Shown one piece after another: positions 6,800 through 44,473 of a stretch of DNA of 64,000 bases. This DNA is from Pseudomonas aeruginosa PAO1. GTDB lineage: Bacteria; Pseudomonadota; Gammaproteobacteria; Pseudomonadales; Pseudomonadaceae. The position numbers and the translations under genes are program-made. Below the pieces are notes generated by a model. That model ran no database searches, was not told the origin of the DNA, and saw only the letters and a list, made by a program, of their open reading frames with translations. Each line of letters opens with the position of its first letter. Positions within the stretch are counted from its first letter, which is position 1. The stretch lies in the NCBI RefSeq assembly GCF_000006765.1, contig NC_002516.2; one strand, given 5' to 3'.

Positions 6800-7090
6800 C
6801 CGCCACGTTATTTTCAAAAGCATGTAGCCAATCGCTTACTACTTTGTAATTAAACTTCCCTGTATTTTCCAAATAATCACGTCATCTAACTGGCAGAGGC
6901 TTATTCGCGCTGCTATATAGCCAGTCAAGCATGACTGGCGAGCCGCTCTGCGCCGCACCCGGCGCGTCGCCAGCCATGAACTTCGAGTTTGGCGGATATA
7001 TAAGGCCGATCATTTAAAGTCGTGGGAACTTTATTTATCCGCCAACATCGTCCTGCGCCACCGACATTCGTTATCGACAGGAAGTTAGAG
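6800..7090 (+). promoter_or_regulatory. AT-rich cupE promoter/leader region
   Basis: Visibly AT-rich intergenic tract upstream of cupE1, containing two inverted repeats (6920-6939; 6989-6998 with 7036-7045). Confidence 0.6.
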
Positions 7091-7639
7091 ATGAATAAAC
7101 GCATTCCGGCAGTCTTGTTGTTCTGTGCCTGCGCCAGCCTGCTGGGCACCGCCCAGGCCGCCGGTACGCTGATCGGCCAGGTCGGCGTGCAGATGGTCAT
7201 CGGTGCCGGCTGCACCATCATCAACGGCAGCGTCAGCGGCGGTATCAACCAGTGGGGAACCCTGGACTTCGGCAGCCATTCCGACCTCACCAACGTGGTC
7301 GACGCGCAGACCGTCGGCACCAGCGGCAATATCCAGATCCAGTGCAGCACCGGCCTGACCCCGAGCCTGACGGTGAACGCAGGCCTGCACGCCAGCGGCG
7401 GCCAGCGCTACATGCAGAACACCACCACCACCAGCAGCACCATCGCCTACAACATCTATTCGGACGCCGCGCGCAGCGCGCTGATCCAGGCCAACACACC
7501 GGTGGACATCTCCTCGGTCTCCACCGGCACCGCGGTCAACATCCCCCTCTATGGCCGCGTGGTGCCCACCGGACAAAGCACACCCACGCCGACGGCGGGG
7601 ACCTACACCGACACCCTGCTGGTCACCATCGCCTGGTAA
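7091..7639 (+). CDS. cupE1: Archaic chaperone-usher major pilin CupE1 (spore coat U/Csu type)
   Basis: Signal peptide, IGAGC, WGTLDFG, IQCS, YNIYSD, C-terminal GTYTDTLLVTIAW. Confidence 0.92.
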   Translation: MNKRIPAVLLFCACASLLGTAQAAGTLIGQVGVQMVIGAGCTIINGSVSGGINQWGTLDFGSHSDLTNVVDAQTVGTSGNIQIQCSTGLTPSLTVNAGLHASGGQRYMQNTTTTSSTIAYNIYSDAARSALIQANTPVDISSVSTGTAVNIPLYGRVVPTGQSTPTPTAGTYTDTLLVTIAW

Positions 7640-7669
7640 GACGCGCCGCCAGGCGCGGCGCCAGGCAGC

Positions 7670-8203
7670 ATGGTCCTGGGGGGACCGATGAGCCTGAACC
7701 GCTACTTCACCGGAGGACTGCTCTGCCTGCTCGGCTGCAACCCGGCAAACGCGCAGACCGCCACCATCGTCCTGAGCGCCACGCTGCTCCCGGCCTGCGA
7801 GGCAGGTAGCGTCGGCAGCGGCGGCGCGATCACCTTCGGCACCCTCGACTTCGGCCAGTACGCCTCCCTGAACAACGCCATCAGCGCCACCAGCCAGCAA
7901 GGCGCAGGCTCCATCCGGGTCAGGTGCGTCAGCGGCCAGACCTATGCGATCACGCTCGACGGCGGGCTCTACGGCAGCGTCGCCACGCGGCGCATGGCGA
8001 ACATCGCCAACACCGCCCTCACCCTGACCTACAACCTGTACAGCGACCGCCCCGGCGGCATCGTCTGGGACAACACCACCGGCGTTGCCGCCACCGGCAA
8101 CGGCAACGACCAGTGGTACCCCATCTACGGCCTGGTGCCGGCACAGACCACGCCGGTCGCCGGGACCTACCGCGACACCGTCAACGTGACCATCAGTTGG
8201 TGA
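7670..8203 (+). CDS. cupE2: Minor pilin CupE2
   Basis: LLPAC, FGTLDFG, YNLYSD, GTYRDTVNVTISW; alternative start at 7688. Confidence 0.9.
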   Translation: MVLGGPMSLNRYFTGGLLCLLGCNPANAQTATIVLSATLLPACEAGSVGSGGAITFGTLDFGQYASLNNAISATSQQGAGSIRVRCVSGQTYAITLDGGLYGSVATRRMANIANTALTLTYNLYSDRPGGIVWDNTTGVAATGNGNDQWYPIYGLVPAQTTPVAGTYRDTVNVTISW

Positions 8204-8745
8204 TGCCGATGTCCAGCCGGCGTCTATTCCTGTCGCTTCTCCTGCTCCCGCTGCCGAACCTGGTCGCGCATGCCGATCCATCGCCGATCAGCCGCGCCTT
8301 CCAGGTCCAGGCGGTGGTCGCCAACGGCTGCGCCTTCGGCACCGCCATCAGCAACAACGCCTATGACCTCGGCACCCTGAGCTTCGGCACCCTCGGCAAC
8401 CTGGCCAGTCCGGTTAACGTCGCCAGCAGCTCCGGGGCCGGCTCCATCGTCCTGACCTGCACTCCGGGAATGACCGTCTCCGTCGCCCTCGACTACGGGG
8501 TCAATGGCGGCAGCAGCAGCCAGCGCTACCTGAAGCGGGTGAGCGGTAACGAGACCCTCGCCTACCAGCTCTACCAGGATGCCGCCTACTCCCAGGTCTG
8601 GGGCAACGGGGCACTCGCGCGGACCATCGCCAACTTTCCCGCCAGCACCCAGACCTACACGGTATACGCGCGCCTGTTCGCGGTCGGCAGCCTGCCGTCC
8701 GCCGGCAACTACCGCGATACCGTCACCGTCACCCTTTCGTTCTGA
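8203..8745 (+). CDS. cupE3: Minor pilin CupE3
   Basis: TGATG overlap with cupE2; VANGC, LGTLSFG, YQLYQD, GNYRDTVTVTLSF. Confidence 0.9.
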   Translation: MPMSSRRLFLSLLLLPLPNLVAHADPSPISRAFQVQAVVANGCAFGTAISNNAYDLGTLSFGTLGNLASPVNVASSSGAGSIVLTCTPGMTVSVALDYGVNGGSSSQRYLKRVSGNETLAYQLYQDAAYSQVWGNGALARTIANFPASTQTYTVYARLFAVGSLPSAGNYRDTVTVTLSF

Positions 8746-8763
8746 GCCGTCATGGAGGATCAC

Positions 8764-9552
8764 ATGCCCAGTCCACACCTACCTCTCCGCCCCAGCCGCT
8801 GGCTTGCGGCGCTGCTGGCGCTGCTCCTGGGCGGCCCGGCACAGGCCGCCAGTGCGGTGCTGATCTGGCCGATCAACCCGGCCATCGAAGCCGACCAGCC
8901 GGCCACGGCGCTGTGGCTGGAGAATCGCGGCAAGCAACCGGTGACCCTGCAGGTGCGCGTGCTCGGCTGGTCCCAGGCGGATTTCCAAGACGTCTATCGC
9001 AACCAGCAGGCAGTGATTCCCAGCCCGCCCTTCGTCAAGGTCGAGCCGGGCCGCCGGCAACTGGTCCGGCTGATCCGCCAGGGCGGCCAGCCCAGCACGC
9101 CGGAGGACGCCTACCGGGTGCTGATCGACGAAGTGCCCGACGGCGACGCGGGGCAGACGCAACGAAGCCCCGGTCTCGCCCTGCAGTTCCAGATGCGCTA
9201 TTCGGTACCGCTGTTCGTCAGCGCCGACGGCGTCTGGACCCAGCCGCGTAGCGATGTCGAGCGCGACCCGGCCGACGCGACCCGGCCGAAGCTGGCCTGG
9301 CGGCTGGTCGAGGAACAGGGCAAGCGTTACCTGCAGGTGCGCAACGAGGGTAGCGTGCACGCCCGCCTCAGCCATGTCCGCTGGGAGGGCAACGGCCGCA
9401 GCCTGGCGCTGCTGGACGGCCTTCTCGGCTACGTGCTGCCCGGCCGGCAGATGCGCTGGCCGCTGCCGCCGGGGCTGCTGCCGGACTCCGGCATGACCCT
9501 GAAACTGCAACTGGCGGACAACGACGCGCCGATCAGCGTTCCCGGGTACTGA
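8764..9552 (+). CDS. cupE4: Periplasmic pilus chaperone CupE4
   Basis: PapD-like LWLEN, QVRVLGW, EDAYRVLIDEVP, MRYSVPLF; GGAGG RBS before ATG 8764. Confidence 0.92.
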   Translation: MPSPHLPLRPSRWLAALLALLLGGPAQAASAVLIWPINPAIEADQPATALWLENRGKQPVTLQVRVLGWSQADFQDVYRNQQAVIPSPPFVKVEPGRRQLVRLIRQGGQPSTPEDAYRVLIDEVPDGDAGQTQRSPGLALQFQMRYSVPLFVSADGVWTQPRSDVERDPADATRPKLAWRLVEEQGKRYLQVRNEGSVHARLSHVRWEGNGRSLALLDGLLGYVLPGRQMRWPLPPGLLPDSGMTLKLQLADNDAPISVPGY

Positions 9553-9568
9553 GGCGGACGTCGGTCCC

Positions 9569-11941
9569 GTGCCTCGCCCGTGTCAGCGGCGCTCTCGCCG
9601 CCACCGCTCGCTACTGATCGGCCTGGCGCTGCTCTCCCCTGTCCATGCGGCGGACTACCTGGCCGGACTGCCGCCGCCGCAACCCGCTCCGTCCGGCGGC
9701 GGCAACGTCCTCTACTACTTGGAACTGGTGATCAACGGCCGCGACAGCGGCCAGGTGGTGCCGGTCAACGCCGCCGATGGCCATTACCTGCTCGACGCCG
9801 CGGCCCTGCGCGAAGCCGGCGTGCGCCTGCCTGGCAACCCCGCCGGACAGGTCGCGGTGGACGCCCTGCCCGAGGTCCGGGCGGACTATGACAGCGCCAG
9901 CCAGCAACTGCACCTGCAAGTGCCGCCGGACTGGCTGCCGGAGCAGCGCTTCGACGATCCCGGACTGGTCGCCCGCGCCCCGGCGCGCAGCAGCCTCGGC
10001 GCGCTGTTCAACTACGACCTGTACTACTCGGACCCCGCCGACGGCGCCACGCCCTGGCTTTCCGCGCTGCTCGAGCAACGCCTGTTCGACGGCTTCGGGG
10101 TGATCTCCAACACCGGCGTCTACACCCGCTATTTCGGCGACGCCGACAACCTCGACAGCCGCTACCTGCGCTACGACACCTACTGGCTGTACAACGACGA
10201 ACGCAACATGCACAGCTACCAACTGGGCGACTACGTCAACGGCGCGCTGAACTGGACCACCCCGGTACGCATGGGCGGCTTTCGCTTCGCCCGCAACTTC
10301 GGCGTACGTCCGGACCTGGTCACCTATCCGCTGCTGCGCTTCGACGGCCAGGCCGCCGTACCCAGCACCGTCGACCTGTTCATCAACGGCTACAAGGCCA
10401 GCAGCGCCGACCTGCAACCCGGTCCCTTCGCCATCAGCAACGTGCCGTACATCAACGGAGCCGGCGAAGCCACGGTGGTGACCACCGACGCCCAGGGTCG
10501 ACAAGTGGTGACCAGCCTGCCGTTCTACGTATCCAACACCCTGCTGGCGCGCGGCCTGAGCGATTTCGACCTGTCCGTCGGGCGCCTGCGCGACGACTAC
10601 GGCCTGCGCAACTTCTCCTATGCCGACAACGCCGCCAGCGGCATCTACCGCTACGGCGTCAGCGACCGCCTGACCCTCTCCACCCACGCCGAGGCCGCCA
10701 GCGACCTGCGCCTGCTCGGCATCGGCGGCGACATCGCCGTGGCCACCTTCGGCACCCTCAGCCTGGCGGCCAGCGGCAGCGACGGCCAGGGCGACAGCGG
10801 CCAGCAATACCTGCTCGGCTACTCCTACTATTCGCGACGGCTCGGCCTCAGCCTGCAACACATCGAGCGCAGCGCCGGCTATGGCGACCTCGGCACCCTG
10901 GACGGCGAGTACCAGTTGAGCCGGCGCACCGACCAGGCTACCGCCAGCCTGACCTTCGACGAGCAGGGCACCATCGGTACCGGCTACTTCGACATCCGCG
11001 CCCGCGACGGCAGCCGCACGCGCCTGGCCAACCTCTCCTATAGCCGCCCGATCGGCAGCCGCAGCAGCTTCTACCTGGCGCTGAACAAGGATCTCGACGG
11101 CGACGGCTACAGCGCGCTGATGCAACTGGTGATTCCCTTCGACATCAACGGCCTGCTGAACATCGGCGTCACCCGCGACAGCGACCGGCGCTACAGCGAG
11201 CGGGTGATCTGGAGCCGCTCCACACCGAGCCAGGGCGGCCTCGGCTGGAACCTCGGCTATGGCGGCGGCGCCAGCCGCTACCAGCAGGCCGACTTGACCT
11301 GGCGCATGCAGAACGTGCAACTGCAGGGCGGCCTCTATGGCGAGACCGGCAACTACACGCGCTGGGCCGATCTCAGCGGCTCGCTGGTATGGATGGACAA
11401 CGCCGTGTTCGCCAGCAATCGGATCAACGACGCCTTCGTCCTGGTCAGCACCAAGGGTTATCCACAGGTGCCGATCCGCTACGAGAACCAACTGATGGGC
11501 AGCACCGACGACAACGGCCACCTGCTGGTGCCCTGGGTCGCGGCCTACTACCCGGCGAAGTTCCAGATCGAGCCGCTGGACCTTCCGGCCAACGTCAGCG
11601 CGCCCGAAGTCGAGCAGCGCGTGGCGGTACGCCAGGGCAGCGGCCTGCTGCTGGATTTCCCGATCCGTGCCGTAGTCGCCGCCAGCATCAGCCTGGTGGA
11701 CGAGCGCGGCGAACCGCTGCCGCTGGGCAGCCAGGCCGAAGAAACCGGCAGCGGCCAGCGCGCCAGCGTCGGCTGGGACGGCCAGGTCTATTTCGAAGGA
11801 TTGCAAAGCGACAACCAGCTACGCGTGGTCCGCCCCGACGGCCGGGCCTGCCAGGCACGCTTCCGCCTGGACACGCGCAAACCCACCGTCAGCCAGGTCG
11901 GCCCGCTGACCTGCTCGGCCCCGATCGGAGATACGCCATGA
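9569..11941 (+). CDS. cupE5: Outer-membrane usher CupE5
   Basis: 790 aa; YYLELVING, GALFNYDLY, PSTVDLFING, PGPFAI usher motifs. Confidence 0.93.
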   Translation: MPRPCQRRSRRHRSLLIGLALLSPVHAADYLAGLPPPQPAPSGGGNVLYYLELVINGRDSGQVVPVNAADGHYLLDAAALREAGVRLPGNPAGQVAVDALPEVRADYDSASQQLHLQVPPDWLPEQRFDDPGLVARAPARSSLGALFNYDLYYSDPADGATPWLSALLEQRLFDGFGVISNTGVYTRYFGDADNLDSRYLRYDTYWLYNDERNMHSYQLGDYVNGALNWTTPVRMGGFRFARNFGVRPDLVTYPLLRFDGQAAVPSTVDLFINGYKASSADLQPGPFAISNVPYINGAGEATVVTTDAQGRQVVTSLPFYVSNTLLARGLSDFDLSVGRLRDDYGLRNFSYADNAASGIYRYGVSDRLTLSTHAEAASDLRLLGIGGDIAVATFGTLSLAASGSDGQGDSGQQYLLGYSYYSRRLGLSLQHIERSAGYGDLGTLDGEYQLSRRTDQATASLTFDEQGTIGTGYFDIRARDGSRTRLANLSYSRPIGSRSSFYLALNKDLDGDGYSALMQLVIPFDINGLLNIGVTRDSDRRYSERVIWSRSTPSQGGLGWNLGYGGGASRYQQADLTWRMQNVQLQGGLYGETGNYTRWADLSGSLVWMDNAVFASNRINDAFVLVSTKGYPQVPIRYENQLMGSTDDNGHLLVPWVAAYYPAKFQIEPLDLPANVSAPEVEQRVAVRQGSGLLLDFPIRAVVAASISLVDERGEPLPLGSQAEETGSGQRASVGWDGQVYFEGLQSDNQLRVVRPDGRACQARFRLDTRKPTVSQVGPLTCSAPIGDTP

Positions 11942-12885
11942 GCCGCCACTCCACGTCCGCCTGCCTGCTCGGCTTCGCTACGCTCTGCGCCAGCCCGTTG
12001 CTGCTCGCCGCCTGCACCACCAGCTCCGGCACCGGCAATTTCGGCAGCCTGAGCTCGTTCACCGTGGCCAGCACCGCCCAGACCATCACCGGCACCACCG
12101 GCTTCAAGTGCACCGGCAGCCTGTTGTCGATCCTCAGCACCAACACCATCGACGCGACCATCGCCAGCACCGCCAATCCGCTGGGCACCACGCCGCGGCT
12201 GTACAACGCCGCCAGCGGCACCTACCTGCCCTACAGTATCTGCAAGGACAACGGCTGCGGCACCGTCTACAACGTCGGCTCGACGGTACGCTGGAGCAGC
12301 ACCACCTTCCTCGGCATCCTCGGCCTGTTCAACGCCACCGACGGCAGCCTGCCGCTGTACCTGCGCACCGCCACCGGGGTGACCCTGCCGGCCGGCACCT
12401 ATACCGATACCATCGGCCTGAACTGGGCCTGGCACCTGTGCGCGGCGGGCATCGGCCCAGTCTGCGTATACGACGACGGCACCGCCAGCAGCAGCGTCAA
12501 CGTTACCCTGACGGTGCTCAAGGACTGCTTCATCGACAGCGCTCCGGACCTCAGCTTCGGCAGCGCCGCGCTGGTCTCGGCCTTCACCGCGGTGAACCAG
12601 AACATTGGCGTGCGCTGCACCCTGAACGCCACCTATACCATCGGCTTCGACAACGGCAACAACTTCAGCGGCGGCTGGCGGCGAATGCTCAGCGGCGCCA
12701 ACGCGATCCAGTACAACCTCTACAAACCGGGAGACTCGACGGTCTGGACCACCAGCAACACCCAGGCAGGCACCGGTAGCGGCGCCGCGCAGAACGTGCC
12801 GTACCGGGCCATCGTCAACCCGGCCCAGGGCAACGTCCCCGCCGGTACCTACAGCGATACCGTGCGGGTGATCCTCACCTACTGA
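11938..12885 (+). CDS. cupE6: Two-domain tip adhesin CupE6
   Basis: ATGA overlap with the usher stop; two spore-coat-U-like domains, each ending GTY(T/S)DT. Confidence 0.9.
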   Translation: MSRHSTSACLLGFATLCASPLLLAACTTSSGTGNFGSLSSFTVASTAQTITGTTGFKCTGSLLSILSTNTIDATIASTANPLGTTPRLYNAASGTYLPYSICKDNGCGTVYNVGSTVRWSSTTFLGILGLFNATDGSLPLYLRTATGVTLPAGTYTDTIGLNWAWHLCAAGIGPVCVYDDGTASSSVNVTLTVLKDCFIDSAPDLSFGSAALVSAFTAVNQNIGVRCTLNATYTIGFDNGNNFSGGWRRMLSGANAIQYNLYKPGDSTVWTTSNTQAGTGSGAAQNVPYRAIVNPAQGNVPAGTYSDTVRVILTY

Positions 12886-41031: not shown

Positions 41032-41568
41032 TCAACGCGGGGCGACGGTGAAGATATTGACGTTGCCCTGCAGCTTGAGGGTGCCGTCGATGCGTGCGCT
41101 GACCAGGTTGGTCTGCACCAGCCCGGGATCGGTACCGCGCGCCTTGTTGGCGCCAGCGATGGTGAAGCTCAGGTCCTGGAAGCTGGTGTCCTTCAGGCCG
41201 ACGCGCAGCACCGGGCGGTTGAAGGCGGCGCCGTCGCCGCCGAAGCCGTCCTTGATGGTCACCACGTCCAGGGTGACTTCGTCGAAGCTGAACTTGCCGC
41301 TGATATCGTCGATCACCAGGTAGTTGTTGCCGCTGCCGGCCGGCTGGATCGCCAGGCGCGCGCCGCAACCGCCGGCGCAGCGCGTCTGCGAAGGATTTTC
41401 CTGGAGATTGAGCGAGGCGCTGATGCTGATCCCGGCCTGGCCGACCACGTCGTCCAGATCGCTATCGCCCAGCGAGCGCAACTCGGCCCCGGCCGAAGCG
41501 CTGAACAGCAGCGCCAGCGCCGCGAGGATGCCGATGCCGCCTGCCAGTGGATGAGTCTGCTTGGCCAT
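41032..41568 (-). CDS. Secreted DUF6160/FilA-like protein 3
   Basis: Signal peptide then AELRSLGDSDLDDVVGQAGI; beta-rich; CAGGC. Confidence 0.75.
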   Translation of the reverse strand: MAKQTHPLAGGIGILAALALLFSASAGAELRSLGDSDLDDVVGQAGISISASLNLQENPSQTRCAGGCGARLAIQPAGSGNNYLVIDDISGKFSFDEVTLDVVTIKDGFGGDGAAFNRPVLRVGLKDTSFQDLSFTIAGANKARGTDPGLVQTNLVSARIDGTLKLQGNVNIFTVAPR

Positions 41569-41598
41569 GTGCTGCGTACCTCGTTTCGCGCCGCCACC

Positions 41599-42618
41599 TC
41601 AGAGGTTGTGCGACGTCACCTTCAGGTAGTTGAAGCTGAGCCCGGATATCTCGTTGCGGCCCATGTTGTAGCCGCCGGTCGGTACCTGCCCGTAGCCTGG
41701 CCGGGTACCGCCGATGTTGAGGTTCTCGATCACCAGGCTGGTGCGCGGCGCATTGGCGTAGAAGTCGGCGGCGTTGGCCAGGGTCAGCTTGGGCAGTTCG
41801 AAAGTGAAGTTGCCGTCGGCGGTGACCGAGAACAGCAACGGCTGCGACTTCCCGTAGCCAAGCGCGACGCTGGCATAGGCGTTGGTCAGGTAGACGGTGC
41901 GCGCGGCCTGCTCAGCGGCGCTGACGCAACTGGGCGAGCCAGCACCGCAGGACATGATCTCGAAAGTCTTGGCGTAGAGGTTCAGGCGTATCTCGCCAAC
42001 CAGTTGGCTGCGCGCGTTGGCGCCCCAGAAGCGCAGGTAGGAACCGTCCATCGCCAGTTCGGAGAAGTCCAGGTTGAGCACATCGGTGCGCGTGGAAGTG
42101 ACGCCGAAGTCGAAGCGGATGCCGGCGTCGACCTTTTCGCTGGCCCGGCTCGAGCAGTTGCTGCCGGCACCGGCGTAACCAGCGATGCACGGCTGGCCGC
42201 CGGCGCCGCTCACCAGGCTGGGGAAAGCCAGCTCGATCACGTCCGCGGTGTCCGGCAAGGTGCTGACCACCCGCCCGTCGTCGAGCTGGGTGGTCAGCAC
42301 CGAACCCTTGGCCAGATTCAGCTTGAACGGGAAATTGAGACGGCCGAGAGTCACCGGCGCCAGGGTGCTGCCCTTGTTGCTGCCAGTGGCGGCGACGTAC
42401 AGCTCCTTTACCGTAATCGGCACGTTCTGCCCGGTGGCGGTGTTGGTCACGCCATTGATCGCGATGGTGGCCTTGTTGCCGTCGACCATGGCGCTGTCGA
42501 GGACGAAGCCGATGCCGGCACCCTGCACGTCCGACAGTTGCTCGTCGTCGAGCGCTGTCATCTCGGCATGGGCGAAGGGGGCGGCCAGCAGGGCCGCGAG
42601 CAGGCAGGCGCGACTCAT
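41599..42618 (-). CDS. Secreted DUF6160/FilA-like protein 2
   Basis: Signal peptide then EMTALDDEQLSDVQGAGI; two Cys pairs; starts 1 nt after the upstream stop. Confidence 0.75.
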   Translation of the reverse strand: MSRACLLAALLAAPFAHAEMTALDDEQLSDVQGAGIGFVLDSAMVDGNKATIAINGVTNTATGQNVPITVKELYVAATGSNKGSTLAPVTLGRLNFPFKLNLAKGSVLTTQLDDGRVVSTLPDTADVIELAFPSLVSGAGGQPCIAGYAGAGSNCSSRASEKVDAGIRFDFGVTSTRTDVLNLDFSELAMDGSYLRFWGANARSQLVGEIRLNLYAKTFEIMSCGAGSPSCVSAAEQAARTVYLTNAYASVALGYGKSQPLLFSVTADGNFTFELPKLTLANAADFYANAPRTSLVIENLNIGGTRPGYGQVPTGGYNMGRNEISGLSFNYLKVTSHNL

Positions 42619-42619
42619 C

Positions 42620-43666
42620 TCAGCAGCCCTTGTTCAGGCCGCCCAGGCAGGTGTCCTGCCGTGGAATGCCATTGAAGGCCTGACCGAAGTCGACCTTGAT
42701 CGGCGCCGTTCCATCGGCGTTGCGCGACATGTTGAGGAAGGCACCGGCCAGCGCGGCGACCAGCTTGGAGGGATCCTGCTGGTCGCGCCACTGGACGTTC
42801 TGGCTCTGCATCGAGATGAAGAAGCCTTTCGACGAGTCGATGAAGTTCTGCGCGTTGTTCGGATCCACGGTGCCGATCGGGAACGACTGGTACTGGGCCA
42901 GGTTGAAGCATGTCTGGGCGCCCATCAGCTTGCAGTCGTTGGAGGTCAGGAAGGGCAGCAGGACGTTCACCAGGCTGCCGATGATGGTGCTGTCGTGCAT
43001 GTCCAGGGCCGTGCCGTTCTTCAGGCCGATCATGGCAGCGCGGATCGGGTCGGGGTTGCCGGAGCTGTTCACCAGCTCTGCCTGGGCGGTGTACTGAGAG
43101 CTGCCGGTGAGAGTGATGGCGGTCTTCGCCGCCAGGCAGTCGAGGGCCAGCAGGCCGCAGGAAATGCTGCCTCCCAGTTGGCTGCCGGTGCCGTACAGGT
43201 CCACCGGCACGTTGCCGGTGAGGGTTTTGATATCGCCCGAGAGGTAGCCCTTGGCTTCGCCGAAACCGATACGGATGCCGACCATCTTGCTGCCGTCGTA
43301 GGCGAACTCGATGTAGGGATTGCTGATGAGGAACGGGTTGATCGCGCCGGTGGTGTCGTTGACCGTGCCCAGGGCGAAGTTGTCGATGGCGATGTCGGCA
43401 CTGCCGGCAAGCTCGCCGCTGCGGTTGTACTGGCCCAACTGCAGCTTCTTCATGTTCAGTTGGGTCTCGATGTCGGCGCCGAAGTTGATGCGGGTGAAGT
43501 TCAGTCCGTTGGCGGCGTCGGTGGTGAGGTTGATGAAGGCCTGGCCGACCACGTCGGAAAGCTGGTCGTCGTCCAGCGACTCCATCCTCGCCTGGGCGGT
43601 GGCAGCCAGCAGACCGGCGCCGCAGAACAGCGCGCAACGCAGCAGGAAGGGCAGACGACGGGACAT
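42620..43666 (-). CDS. Secreted DUF6160/FilA-like protein 1
   Basis: GAGG RBS, ATG 43666; signal peptide then RMESLDDDQLSDVVGQAFI; three Cys pairs in the mature region. Confidence 0.78.
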   Translation of the reverse strand: MSRRLPFLLRCALFCGAGLLAATAQARMESLDDDQLSDVVGQAFINLTTDAANGLNFTRINFGADIETQLNMKKLQLGQYNRSGELAGSADIAIDNFALGTVNDTTGAINPFLISNPYIEFAYDGSKMVGIRIGFGEAKGYLSGDIKTLTGNVPVDLYGTGSQLGGSISCGLLALDCLAAKTAITLTGSSQYTAQAELVNSSGNPDPIRAAMIGLKNGTALDMHDSTIIGSLVNVLLPFLTSNDCKLMGAQTCFNLAQYQSFPIGTVDPNNAQNFIDSSKGFFISMQSQNVQWRDQQDPSKLVAALAGAFLNMSRNADGTAPIKVDFGQAFNGIPRQDTCLGGLNKGC

Positions 43667-43870
43667 GGGCTCACCTCTTGTTCTTCTCGTGGCCGACGGC
43701 AGAGACACTGCGACCTGTAATCACTATAGAAAGCCCCGGGCGAATCGGGGCCGACCCATAGTCGAGAAAAACCGCCGAACGACGCGGTCGCCGCGCTCGC
43801 TGCAGCGGATGAGCGGTCGCTCGGCCAGGATGGATGTTACCCATCGTCACACGGGGGTAACGTCAGCCTT

Positions 43871-44473
43871 TCACTGCTGGCGGAACAGGCCGATCAGATG
43901 GTCGGCGATGGCGCCCTTGATGGCGTTGAGGCTGAGCAGGGAGTGTGCGCTGAGGCGGGCGGGGTTGATCCGGTGCAGGTGTAGCGAGGGCATGCGCGCT
44001 TCGTACTCGCGCAGGTCGCCCTTGACCAGGATCGGCAGGAACACGTCGTCGTGAGCCTGGTAACGCTGGATCAGCAGTTTCAACCCTTCCTGGAACGGCA
44101 ATTCCTTCGACGCCACCAGGCGGTGCTCGCCGGGAATCTTCAGGTAGAGCCCGCGATAGCCCATGGTCTCGCCCGGCAGGATATGGATCCCGGTGGGCTC
44201 CACCGCGGCCAGCGGGATATCGTGGAAGGTGTCGTGCCAGGCCTGCTCGCTGGGCAGGATGGTGATGCCGCCATGGTCGCTCTCGGGAATCACGAAGCTG
44301 TAGTTGCTGTAGAGCTTCTCGACATAGGCCGAGTAGATGCACAGGCGGTTCTCGAAACGTTTGAGGAAGGCGATCGCCTCGCTGCGGTTGGTGATGGCAT
44401 CCAGGTCCCAGGCAAGGTCACCCTGGTTCTGCAGTTCGGCCCAGCGGGCCTCGGCGTAGGCGGCGTCGTTCAA
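43871..44473 (-). CDS. Hypothetical cytoplasmic protein
   Basis: 200 aa ORF with normal codon usage; TTG start uncertain; no motif recognised. Confidence 0.65.
   Translation of the reverse strand: MNDAAYAEARWAELQNQGDLAWDLDAITNRSEAIAFLKRFENRLCIYSAYVEKLYSNYSFVIPESDHGGITILPSEQAWHDTFHDIPLAAVEPTGIHILPGETMGYRGLYLKIPGEHRLVASKELPFQEGLKLLIQRYQAHDDVFLPILVKGDLREYEARMPSLHLHRINPARLSAHSLLSLNAIKGAIADHLIGLFRQQ

Follow-up and report, generated by a model that had tools for sequence, protein, structure and literature searches.

The locus considered here raises the question of what three adjacent genes, whose exported products have one N-terminal segment in common and belong to a domain family without known function, contribute to Pseudomonas aeruginosa PAO1. 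The genes lie on the minus strand of a 64,000-nucleotide stretch of contig NC_002516.2, the whole of which is referred to as the window, and correspond to PA4682 (gene A, 42620..43666, 348 amino acids), PA4681 (gene B, 41599..42618, 339 amino acids) and PA4680 (gene C, 41032..41568, 178 amino acids, a short 'type II' form); all three were called as open reading frames (ORFs) and matched by the Pfam family DUF6160. The ORF list agrees with an earlier annotation made from the nucleotide sequence alone (the sequence-only reading) both in the gene sizes and in the tight spacing of 1 nt between A and B and 30 nt between B and C. That annotation took the three proteins for paralogous subunits of an extracellular filament. 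The answer that we favor, and regard as somewhat probable, is a different one, namely that A, B and C constitute an extracytoplasmic protein set for the acquisition of alkanes that bears one common address or processing tag. The strongest functional clues, the induction of the operon by n-alkanes and the linkage of a relative to alkB, were absent from the sequence-only reading.

The A-B-C operon belongs to the n-alkane stimulon of P. aeruginosa, together with alkB1, alkB2 and pra. In ribosome profiling (Ribo-seq) of strain ATCC 33988 on n-alkanes versus glycerol, PA4682, PA4681 and PA4680 were increased 70-, 63- and 57-fold, respectively, with values of 218-fold for alkB2, 155-fold for PA0830, 52-fold for pra and 48-fold for a fadL-like gene in the same table (Grady et al., 2017; PMC5410065). 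In microarrays from that study PA4680-82 were up 5-7-fold on alkanes versus glycerol in ATCC 33988, and PA4680 was up 52-fold in PAO1, where it ranked as the 8th highest gene, near alkB2, pra and alkB1; RNA sequencing gave 7-21-fold for PA4680-82 in ATCC 33988 and 60-fold for PA4682 in PAO1 (PMC5410065). Over the datasets, induction ranges from 5- to 70-fold for A, from 7- to 63-fold for B and from 7- to 57-fold for C, values that stand in the supplements of the study without discussion in its main text. Furthermore, PA4682 was the most induced gene (18.4-fold), in the company of alkB2, after PAO1 had been exposed for 1 h to an interface of hexadecane and water (Niepa et al., 2017; PMC5736630). 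Transcripts of PA4683, the gene preceding A, are 38-fold higher in glycerol than in alkanes (PMC5410065), and since this gene is regulated in the opposite sense to A-B-C, it is taken to form a separate transcription unit.

The second clue comes from gene order in other organisms. On the marine contigs L127 (7581-12003), L131 (2578-6153) and L130, an A-family gene is located directly past the gene for an AlkB-family hydroxylase, within a co-directional series that encodes a Fer2-FAD-NAD reductase, the hydroxylase, the A-like DUF6160 protein and a 267-289-residue protein of unknown family, with a gene for an AraC regulator in divergent orientation. The hydroxylase is a membrane protein of 397 amino acids with the motifs NYxEHYG and LQRHxDHH, and its closest solved structures are the alkane 1-monooxygenases 8SBB and 8F6T (E about 1e-37).

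The region upstream of A is also conserved. An element CTCGACTATGGGTCGG (43751..43766, minus strand), unique in the window, overlaps the -35 region, and a -10-like hexamer, TATAGT (43723..43728, minus strand), which is conserved in an alignment of upstream regions, follows about 22 nt downstream. Of 71 Pseudomonas loci, 56 contain the 13-nt core of the element, CGACTATGGGTCG, with at most one mismatch, in most cases at a distance of 91-113 nt from the first gene of the cluster, on its upstream side. Elsewhere in those 20-kb loci the core occurs only a few times, each time ahead of a copy of A. In one locus (L006), the second copy of A has a promoter element of its own. The element CTCGACTATGGGTCGG is probably a regulator binding site, and its conservation points to a dedicated regulator; a simple scan of the locus for sigma-70 promoters and terminators yielded nothing useful and no consensus -35, which suggests that the promoter is activator-dependent. 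Farther upstream, a distal conserved segment, ATGGGTAACA (43835-43844, minus strand), overlaps a perfect 7-bp inverted repeat, GTTACCC-N12-GGGTAAC (43836-43861, minus strand), that lies just past the stop codon of PA4683 and could be either a terminator stem or a regulator site. Control of A through an AlkR operator was considered and set aside, the matches to ATTGTCNNACAAT in the window being at chance level only.

The feature that unites the three proteins is found at their N-termini. As the sequence-only reading had noticed, each begins with a Sec signal peptide, cleaved at an AxA-type site, and continues directly into a shared motif, a 16-residue acidic leader: in A the signal peptide comprises residues 1-26 and the leader residues 27-42 (RMESLDDDQLSDVVGQ, 43541..43588), in B residues 1-18 and 19-34 (EMTALDDEQLSDVQGA, 42517..42564), and in C residues 1-28 and 29-44 (ELRSLGDSDLDDVVGQ, 41437..41484), all encoded on the minus strand. 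The leaders are delimited by statistics gathered over 73 loci, which also underlie the positional frequencies given below. The assignment to DUF6160 (PF19657), made in the earlier annotation, survives a search with the hidden Markov model of the family, in which A, B and C score 32.2, 28.5 and 33.2 bits against a gathering score of 27, and the part of the model covered in B and C is limited to the tag. The core of this tag, a signal peptide followed by a segment of the type L-x-x-L-D-D-x-x-L-S-x-V-x-G-Q, is present in A, B, C and their orthologues, with the AxA signal-peptidase site at -19/-17 and a conserved beta-strand directly C-terminal of the leader. The hydrophobic residues at -15 (Met/Leu), -12 (Leu/Met), -7 (Leu) and -4 (Val/Ile/Leu) and the Gly at -2 (100%) were imposed by the search pattern, which nearly all members matched, whereas Asp at -10 (>90%), Ser at -6 and Ala at -17 lie outside that pattern and yet are conserved. 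Glu occupies position -8 in A and B. The leader closes with Gln at -1 in A and C and with Ala in B; D, the product of a fourth gene found in many relatives of this cluster, has either Gln or Arg there. The spacing of the hydrophobic residues, 3, 5 and 3, would place them on one face of a helix, and does not suggest a donor strand.

Beyond the tag, the three proteins are dissimilar. BLASTP alignments between A, B and C are confined to the first ~25 residues past the signal peptide, and profile-profile comparison (hhalign) of the mature regions of orthologues from the 73 loci, from which all residues up to the leader-final Gly-x had been removed, returned a probability of <10% for every pair. 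The description of A, B and C as paralogues thus holds for an N-terminal tag of ~25 residues and fails for the mature parts; what the operon encodes is the same N-terminal module on unrelated proteins, and by sequence comparison the mature domains of A, B, C and D represent four unrelated families. A weak similarity of C to positions 366-512 of D (E 0.004) was seen. A scan of NCBIfam provided no name for A, B or C, and the literature found on DUF6160 consists of a single incidental mention, that on PA4680-82 of table entries only.

In composition and predicted structure the mature proteins conform to what the sequence-only reading had described. They consist of 33-35% Gly, Asn, Thr and Ser, compared with 17.6% in the neighboring cytoplasmic proteins, and their cysteines occur as short-range pairs only (170/177, 245/253 and 340/348 in A; 144/155 and 224/231 in B; 64/68 in C), including the terminal loop CLGGLNKGC of A. 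The Sec signals and disulfide pairs together indicate that A, B and C leave the cytoplasm. Their C-termini read ...KGC, ...SHNL and ...APR, respectively. Among profile-search relatives of A (P0143-P0287), two endings are found: a Cys loop of the form ...R-x-x-T-C-x-G-x-x-x-G-C, as in the window, and ...R-T-E-Y-I-D-R-G-x-G-L-F, which is frequent among marine taxa and solitary genes.

The AlphaFold2 models of A (27 aligned homologues; predicted local distance difference test score, pLDDT, 81.3; predicted template modeling score, pTM, 0.74) and B (43 homologues; pLDDT 85.7, pTM 0.78) are rich in beta-structure, as expected from the beta-stranded look of the sequences, and consist of very long hairpins with a few helices. 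In both models the signal peptide and leader are of low confidence and stand outside the fold, which begins directly past Gly-x; the leader of A is modeled as a low-confidence short helix. Self-comparison of sequence profiles revealed no internal repeats in A or B. Foldseek searches of the Protein Data Bank (PDB) returned nothing significant for either model (best E 0.31 for A and 0.11 for B, with template modeling, TM, scores of about 0.1), so that the likeness to enzymes that the sequence-only reading had itself set against a fiber is not seen for A and B. A search of the viral models of BFVD with the A model was likewise without significant result, and sequence profiles of A, B and D found no relative among solved structures. 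In the absence of matches from these three sources, the models suggest that A and B are complete and apparently new folds, unlike those of enzymes, pilins, porins and toxins. A profile search gave a weak alginate-lyase match for B (E 0.12), for which the fold search provided no confirmation. One relative, from Marinobacter, bears the name 'Porin' in UniRef, and the Foldseek list for B is topped by porins, but with E values of 0.1-2 and TM of about 0.08; a porin identity was rejected, as no significant barrel match was obtained with Foldseek and the C-termini carry no aromatic beta-signal.

The operon is not confined to P. aeruginosa. Homologues of A, 217 of which were found, are present at full length in many Pseudomonas species, and a profile search with A gave 410 matches among 1.84 billion cluster representatives (library clustered at 50% identity). 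The arrangement mksBEF / (PA4683) / A / B / C is kept in 73 genome loci, Oleispira included, and B directly follows A in nearly all related loci; three loci have the order B-C-A (L026, L027 and L033), and seven contain two tandem copies of A (L006, L011, L012, L097, L121, L124 and L076). In most species, including an Oleispira metagenome-assembled genome, gene D, which also bears the DUF6160 tag, is located ~12 nt past C. It encodes a protein of 773-821 amino acids (L004:12689-15010, L071:12526-14991, L063:12551-14875 and 45 other loci) composed of tandem modules of ~100-120 residues (self-comparison probability 98%). The window holds no trace of a D remnant, and its C gene is full-length and intact, with loops shorter than those of the 200-residue form that accompanies D; this short C is found in other D-less clusters as well, among them those of P. 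citronellolis, P. delhiensis and P. cavernicola. Since C is intact, the window represents a stable three-gene type and not a recent deletion, and with the short C recurring elsewhere there are two stable architectures, A-B-C-D and A-B-Cshort, the window being an example of the second.

Of 80 metagenome contigs from marine or sediment sources, ~40 carry A-B-C-D, and a Hahellaceae genome has A-A-B-C-D amid housekeeping genes. Solitary A-like genes are present in Marinobacter and others, where the neighbor is often a gene for an AraC-type regulator or for a response regulator with a GGDEF pair. The taxa concerned, Marinobacter, Oleispira, Oleibacter/Thalassolituus, Hahellaceae and the aeruginosa, oleovorans, mendocina, citronellolis and resinovorans groups of Pseudomonas, are largely hydrocarbon users, which is suggestive. 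No plasmid copies of A or D were found.

The sequence-only reading had called the locus an orphan, and this description extends to its relatives. Neither the neighboring ORFs nor a Pfam scan revealed an usher, chaperone, porin or exporter next to A-B-C in the window, and no usher, chaperone or outer-membrane channel was found beside the related loci surveyed, about 170 in number (73 genome, 10 Pfam-annotated and 80 metagenome loci). A C39 peptidase is likewise absent from the window, the 73 genome loci, the 10 Pfam-annotated loci and the best 25 of the 107 recurrent neighbor families of the metagenome loci, so that the co-occurring C39 peptidases or outer-membrane transporters anticipated for homologue neighborhoods were not encountered.

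In the mechanism that we propose, A, B and C, which are exported by Sec and stabilized by short-range disulfides, may act jointly, as a complex, in the periplasm, at the outer surface or in the medium, where they could aid the uptake of water-insoluble alkanes either by contact with the oil-water interface or by handing the substrate over to the envelope, in a role comparable, by analogy, to that of Pra or AlkL. The components would be gathered at one place by the common leader, acting as an address, processing or docking signal. A bolder version, which we put forward tentatively and hold to be possible without expecting it, is that the module is a new apparatus for capturing or importing alkanes, made of 3-5 proteins of new fold and common to marine obligate hydrocarbon degraders and alkane-using pseudomonads, with a leader that belongs to a hitherto undescribed class of signals for sorting or assembly in the periplasm.

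Several observations weigh against a role in alkane acquisition. Adjacency to alkB is seen in only two independent assemblies of about 160 loci, PA4682 was the only gene of the operon that passed the thresholds of the interface study (PMC5736630), and the site of the alkB2 repressor AlkR, ATTGTCNNACAAT, is absent upstream of A. In addition, the contrast between alkanes and glycerol could in part reflect relief from catabolite repression, and A, B and C have no entry in the proteomics tables of PMC5410065, an absence that is uninformative either way. If A, B and C were general envelope, biofilm-matrix or stress proteins, their response to alkanes would be an indirect one, brought about by slow growth, catabolite relief or membrane stress; the missing AlkR site agrees with this view, many unrelated genes do shift in alkane-versus-glycerol comparisons, and the neighbor PA4683 has been reported as an AmrZ-bound and AmrZ-regulated gene. 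Such an indirect response nevertheless seems quite improbable, because on three expression platforms and in both strains the operon is induced to the same degree as alkB1, alkB2 and pra, cells in saline already show induction within 1 h of contact with a hexadecane interface, a relative lies inside an alkB-type gene cluster, and PA4683, far from following the operon, responds in the opposite direction.

The filament of the sequence-only reading, in which A, B and C would be the major, minor and tip subunits of a Fil-like fiber outside the chaperone-usher and type IV classes, polymerized via the N-terminal segment by assembly factors encoded elsewhere, has a precedent in pilin sets, which likewise display one N-terminal segment on dissimilar proteins of an operon. 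DUF6160 takes in the N-terminus of FilA, which in Acinetobacter is annotated as a putative pilus protein, FilF is enriched in the air-liquid pellicles of A. baumannii, and the tandem beta modules of D would give an elongated, adhesin- or fiber-like architecture; thin fimbriae are also credited with mediating the adherence of Acinetobacter to hexadecane (Rosenberg, 1982, as described in a citing paper). However, a fiber built from paralogous subunits is difficult to reconcile with three proteins that are dissimilar past the tag, with a leader whose periodicity is helical and does not alternate as a donor strand would, or with models of A and B that are complete, repeat-free folds (pTM 0.74-0.78) unlike a pilin or fiber. 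Moreover, A, B and C do not match the pilus_FilA model, no usher or outer-membrane channel was found next to the surveyed loci, nor a C39 peptidase where their genes were scanned, A-like genes are often solitary and D is missing from the window, and we consider the filament unlikely. Less likely again is that the leader is a propeptide of the double-glycine type, delivered by Sec, cut by an unlinked periplasmic C39-like peptidase (FilB-like or FapD-like) and followed by release via an unlinked channel. In bacteriocins, the consensus register of double-glycine leaders has hydrophobic residues at -4, -7, -12 and -15, and the leaders described here follow it, with an acidic residue at -8 and Gly at -2; the modeled folds begin directly past Gly-x, and in the fil operon FilA is accompanied by a C39 family peptidase and by outer-membrane proteins. 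Classical C39 sites require Gly, Ala or Ser at -1, but A and C have Gln there and D has Gln or Arg, and no C39 gene was found adjacent to the surveyed loci where their genes were scanned.

On its flanks, the operon is bordered by genes for a 278-residue Pro/Ala-rich protein, a GNAT acetyltransferase (rimI) and a 200-residue protein without family, and by an operon that contains MksE (mksBEF). The 278-residue protein is HolD, the psi subunit of P. aeruginosa (PA4679; PMC8879598), and the mksBEF operon corresponds to PA4684-86; the four ORFs between them must therefore be PA4680 (C), PA4681 (B), PA4682 (A) and PA4683. The last of these (43871-44473, minus strand), co-oriented with A and upstream of it, encodes the 200-residue cytoplasmic protein of no family and is missing from about half of the related loci. 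The cupE cluster, which the sequence-only reading had placed in the same window, was located at about 7.0-12.9 kb (~7022-12885, plus strand), about 28 kb from A-B-C; this archaic chaperone-usher cluster comprises SCPU pilins, a PapD-like chaperone and an usher, and no other usher or chaperone is found in the window. Three of its genes, PA4648, PA4649 and PA4651, are expressed 3-11-fold higher on alkanes in PAO1 than in ATCC 33988 (PMC5410065 data). Published tables attach the RAST labels 'RTX toxin', 'large exoprotein' and 'RNase PH' to PA4680-82, but scans of A, B and C against Pfam and NCBIfam back none of these names. One database record, P0140 ('DUF502 domain-containing protein [Acinetobacter baumannii]'), shares 99% identity with a part of C and is probably chimeric or contaminated.

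How alkanes, being insoluble in water, pass from oil droplets to the hydroxylase in the membrane of Gram-negative bacteria is poorly understood, and to our knowledge few uptake factors have been recognized, namely AlkL and FadL-type channels, Pra and AupAB. Being conserved, strongly induced by alkanes, without a known fold and equipped with a common leader, the A-B-C set is a testable candidate for this transfer step. The genes and the domain were already in the databases; the A-B-C(-D) module, its common leader, the folds and the regulation by alkanes had not been described. A strongly alkane-induced and conserved operon has thus been overlooked in a model organism, DUF6160 gains its first functional context, and the misleading automatic RAST names of PA4680-82 can be corrected.

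Compared with known systems, the closest formal relationship is that to DUF6160 itself, a family without known function for which all three proteins exceed the curated cutoff. The Acinetobacter Fil proteins are, like A-B-C, Sec-exported and uncharacterized, and the N-terminus of FilA appears to fall in the same DUF6160 region. The link between DUF6160 and FilA stands to the extent that the N-terminus of D-type relatives weakly matches the NCBIfam model NF050077 pilus_FilA (26-31 bits against a cutoff of 220 bits, model positions 14-100 only), but it does not extend to A, B and C, which give no match to this model even at E<=1, or to the ~280-residue A-like relatives, which give none either. 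The fil operon encodes FilA, a C39 family peptidase, two outer-membrane proteins, FilE and the lipoprotein FilF (PMC4751259, Table S3), whereas for neither its C39 peptidase gene nor its outer-membrane genes (FilC, FilD, FilF) was a counterpart found beside A-B-C or the surveyed relatives. Papers on Acinetobacter alkane transcriptomes make no mention of Fil or pili. The leader resembles double-glycine leaders in its amphipathic, acidic character, its hydrophobic positions and its Gly at -2, and differs from them in the Sec signal ahead of it, in a -1 residue that is mostly Gln and in having no linked C39 peptidase or dedicated channel. With chaperone-usher pili such as CupE, the likeness is that of an exported protein set with a common N-terminal segment; Pfam detects no Fimbrial or SCPU domain, usher or chaperone in A, B, C or their neighbors, and the Ig-like pilin fold is not seen. 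Type IV pilins, with their G|F/M-T-L-x-E site and hydrophobic N-terminal helix, differ from A, B and C, which have AxA sites and an acidic leader, and the repeats of curli and Fap amyloids are absent from A and B, with no CsgG- or FapF-type channel linked. A-B-C therefore stands outside the Fil, chaperone-usher, type IV, curli/Fap, classical double-glycine and porin classes.

The nearest functional parallels are the factors that accompany alkane oxidation. Pra (PA4590, 'protein activator of alkane oxidation') and the AlkL/FadL-type factors are, like A-B-C, exported and co-induced with alkB, and the analogy is functional only, no relationship in sequence or fold having been found. In P. putida GPo1, alkL is part of the alk operon, and the A-family gene holds a similar place in the alkB-type cluster of the marine contigs L127 and L131.

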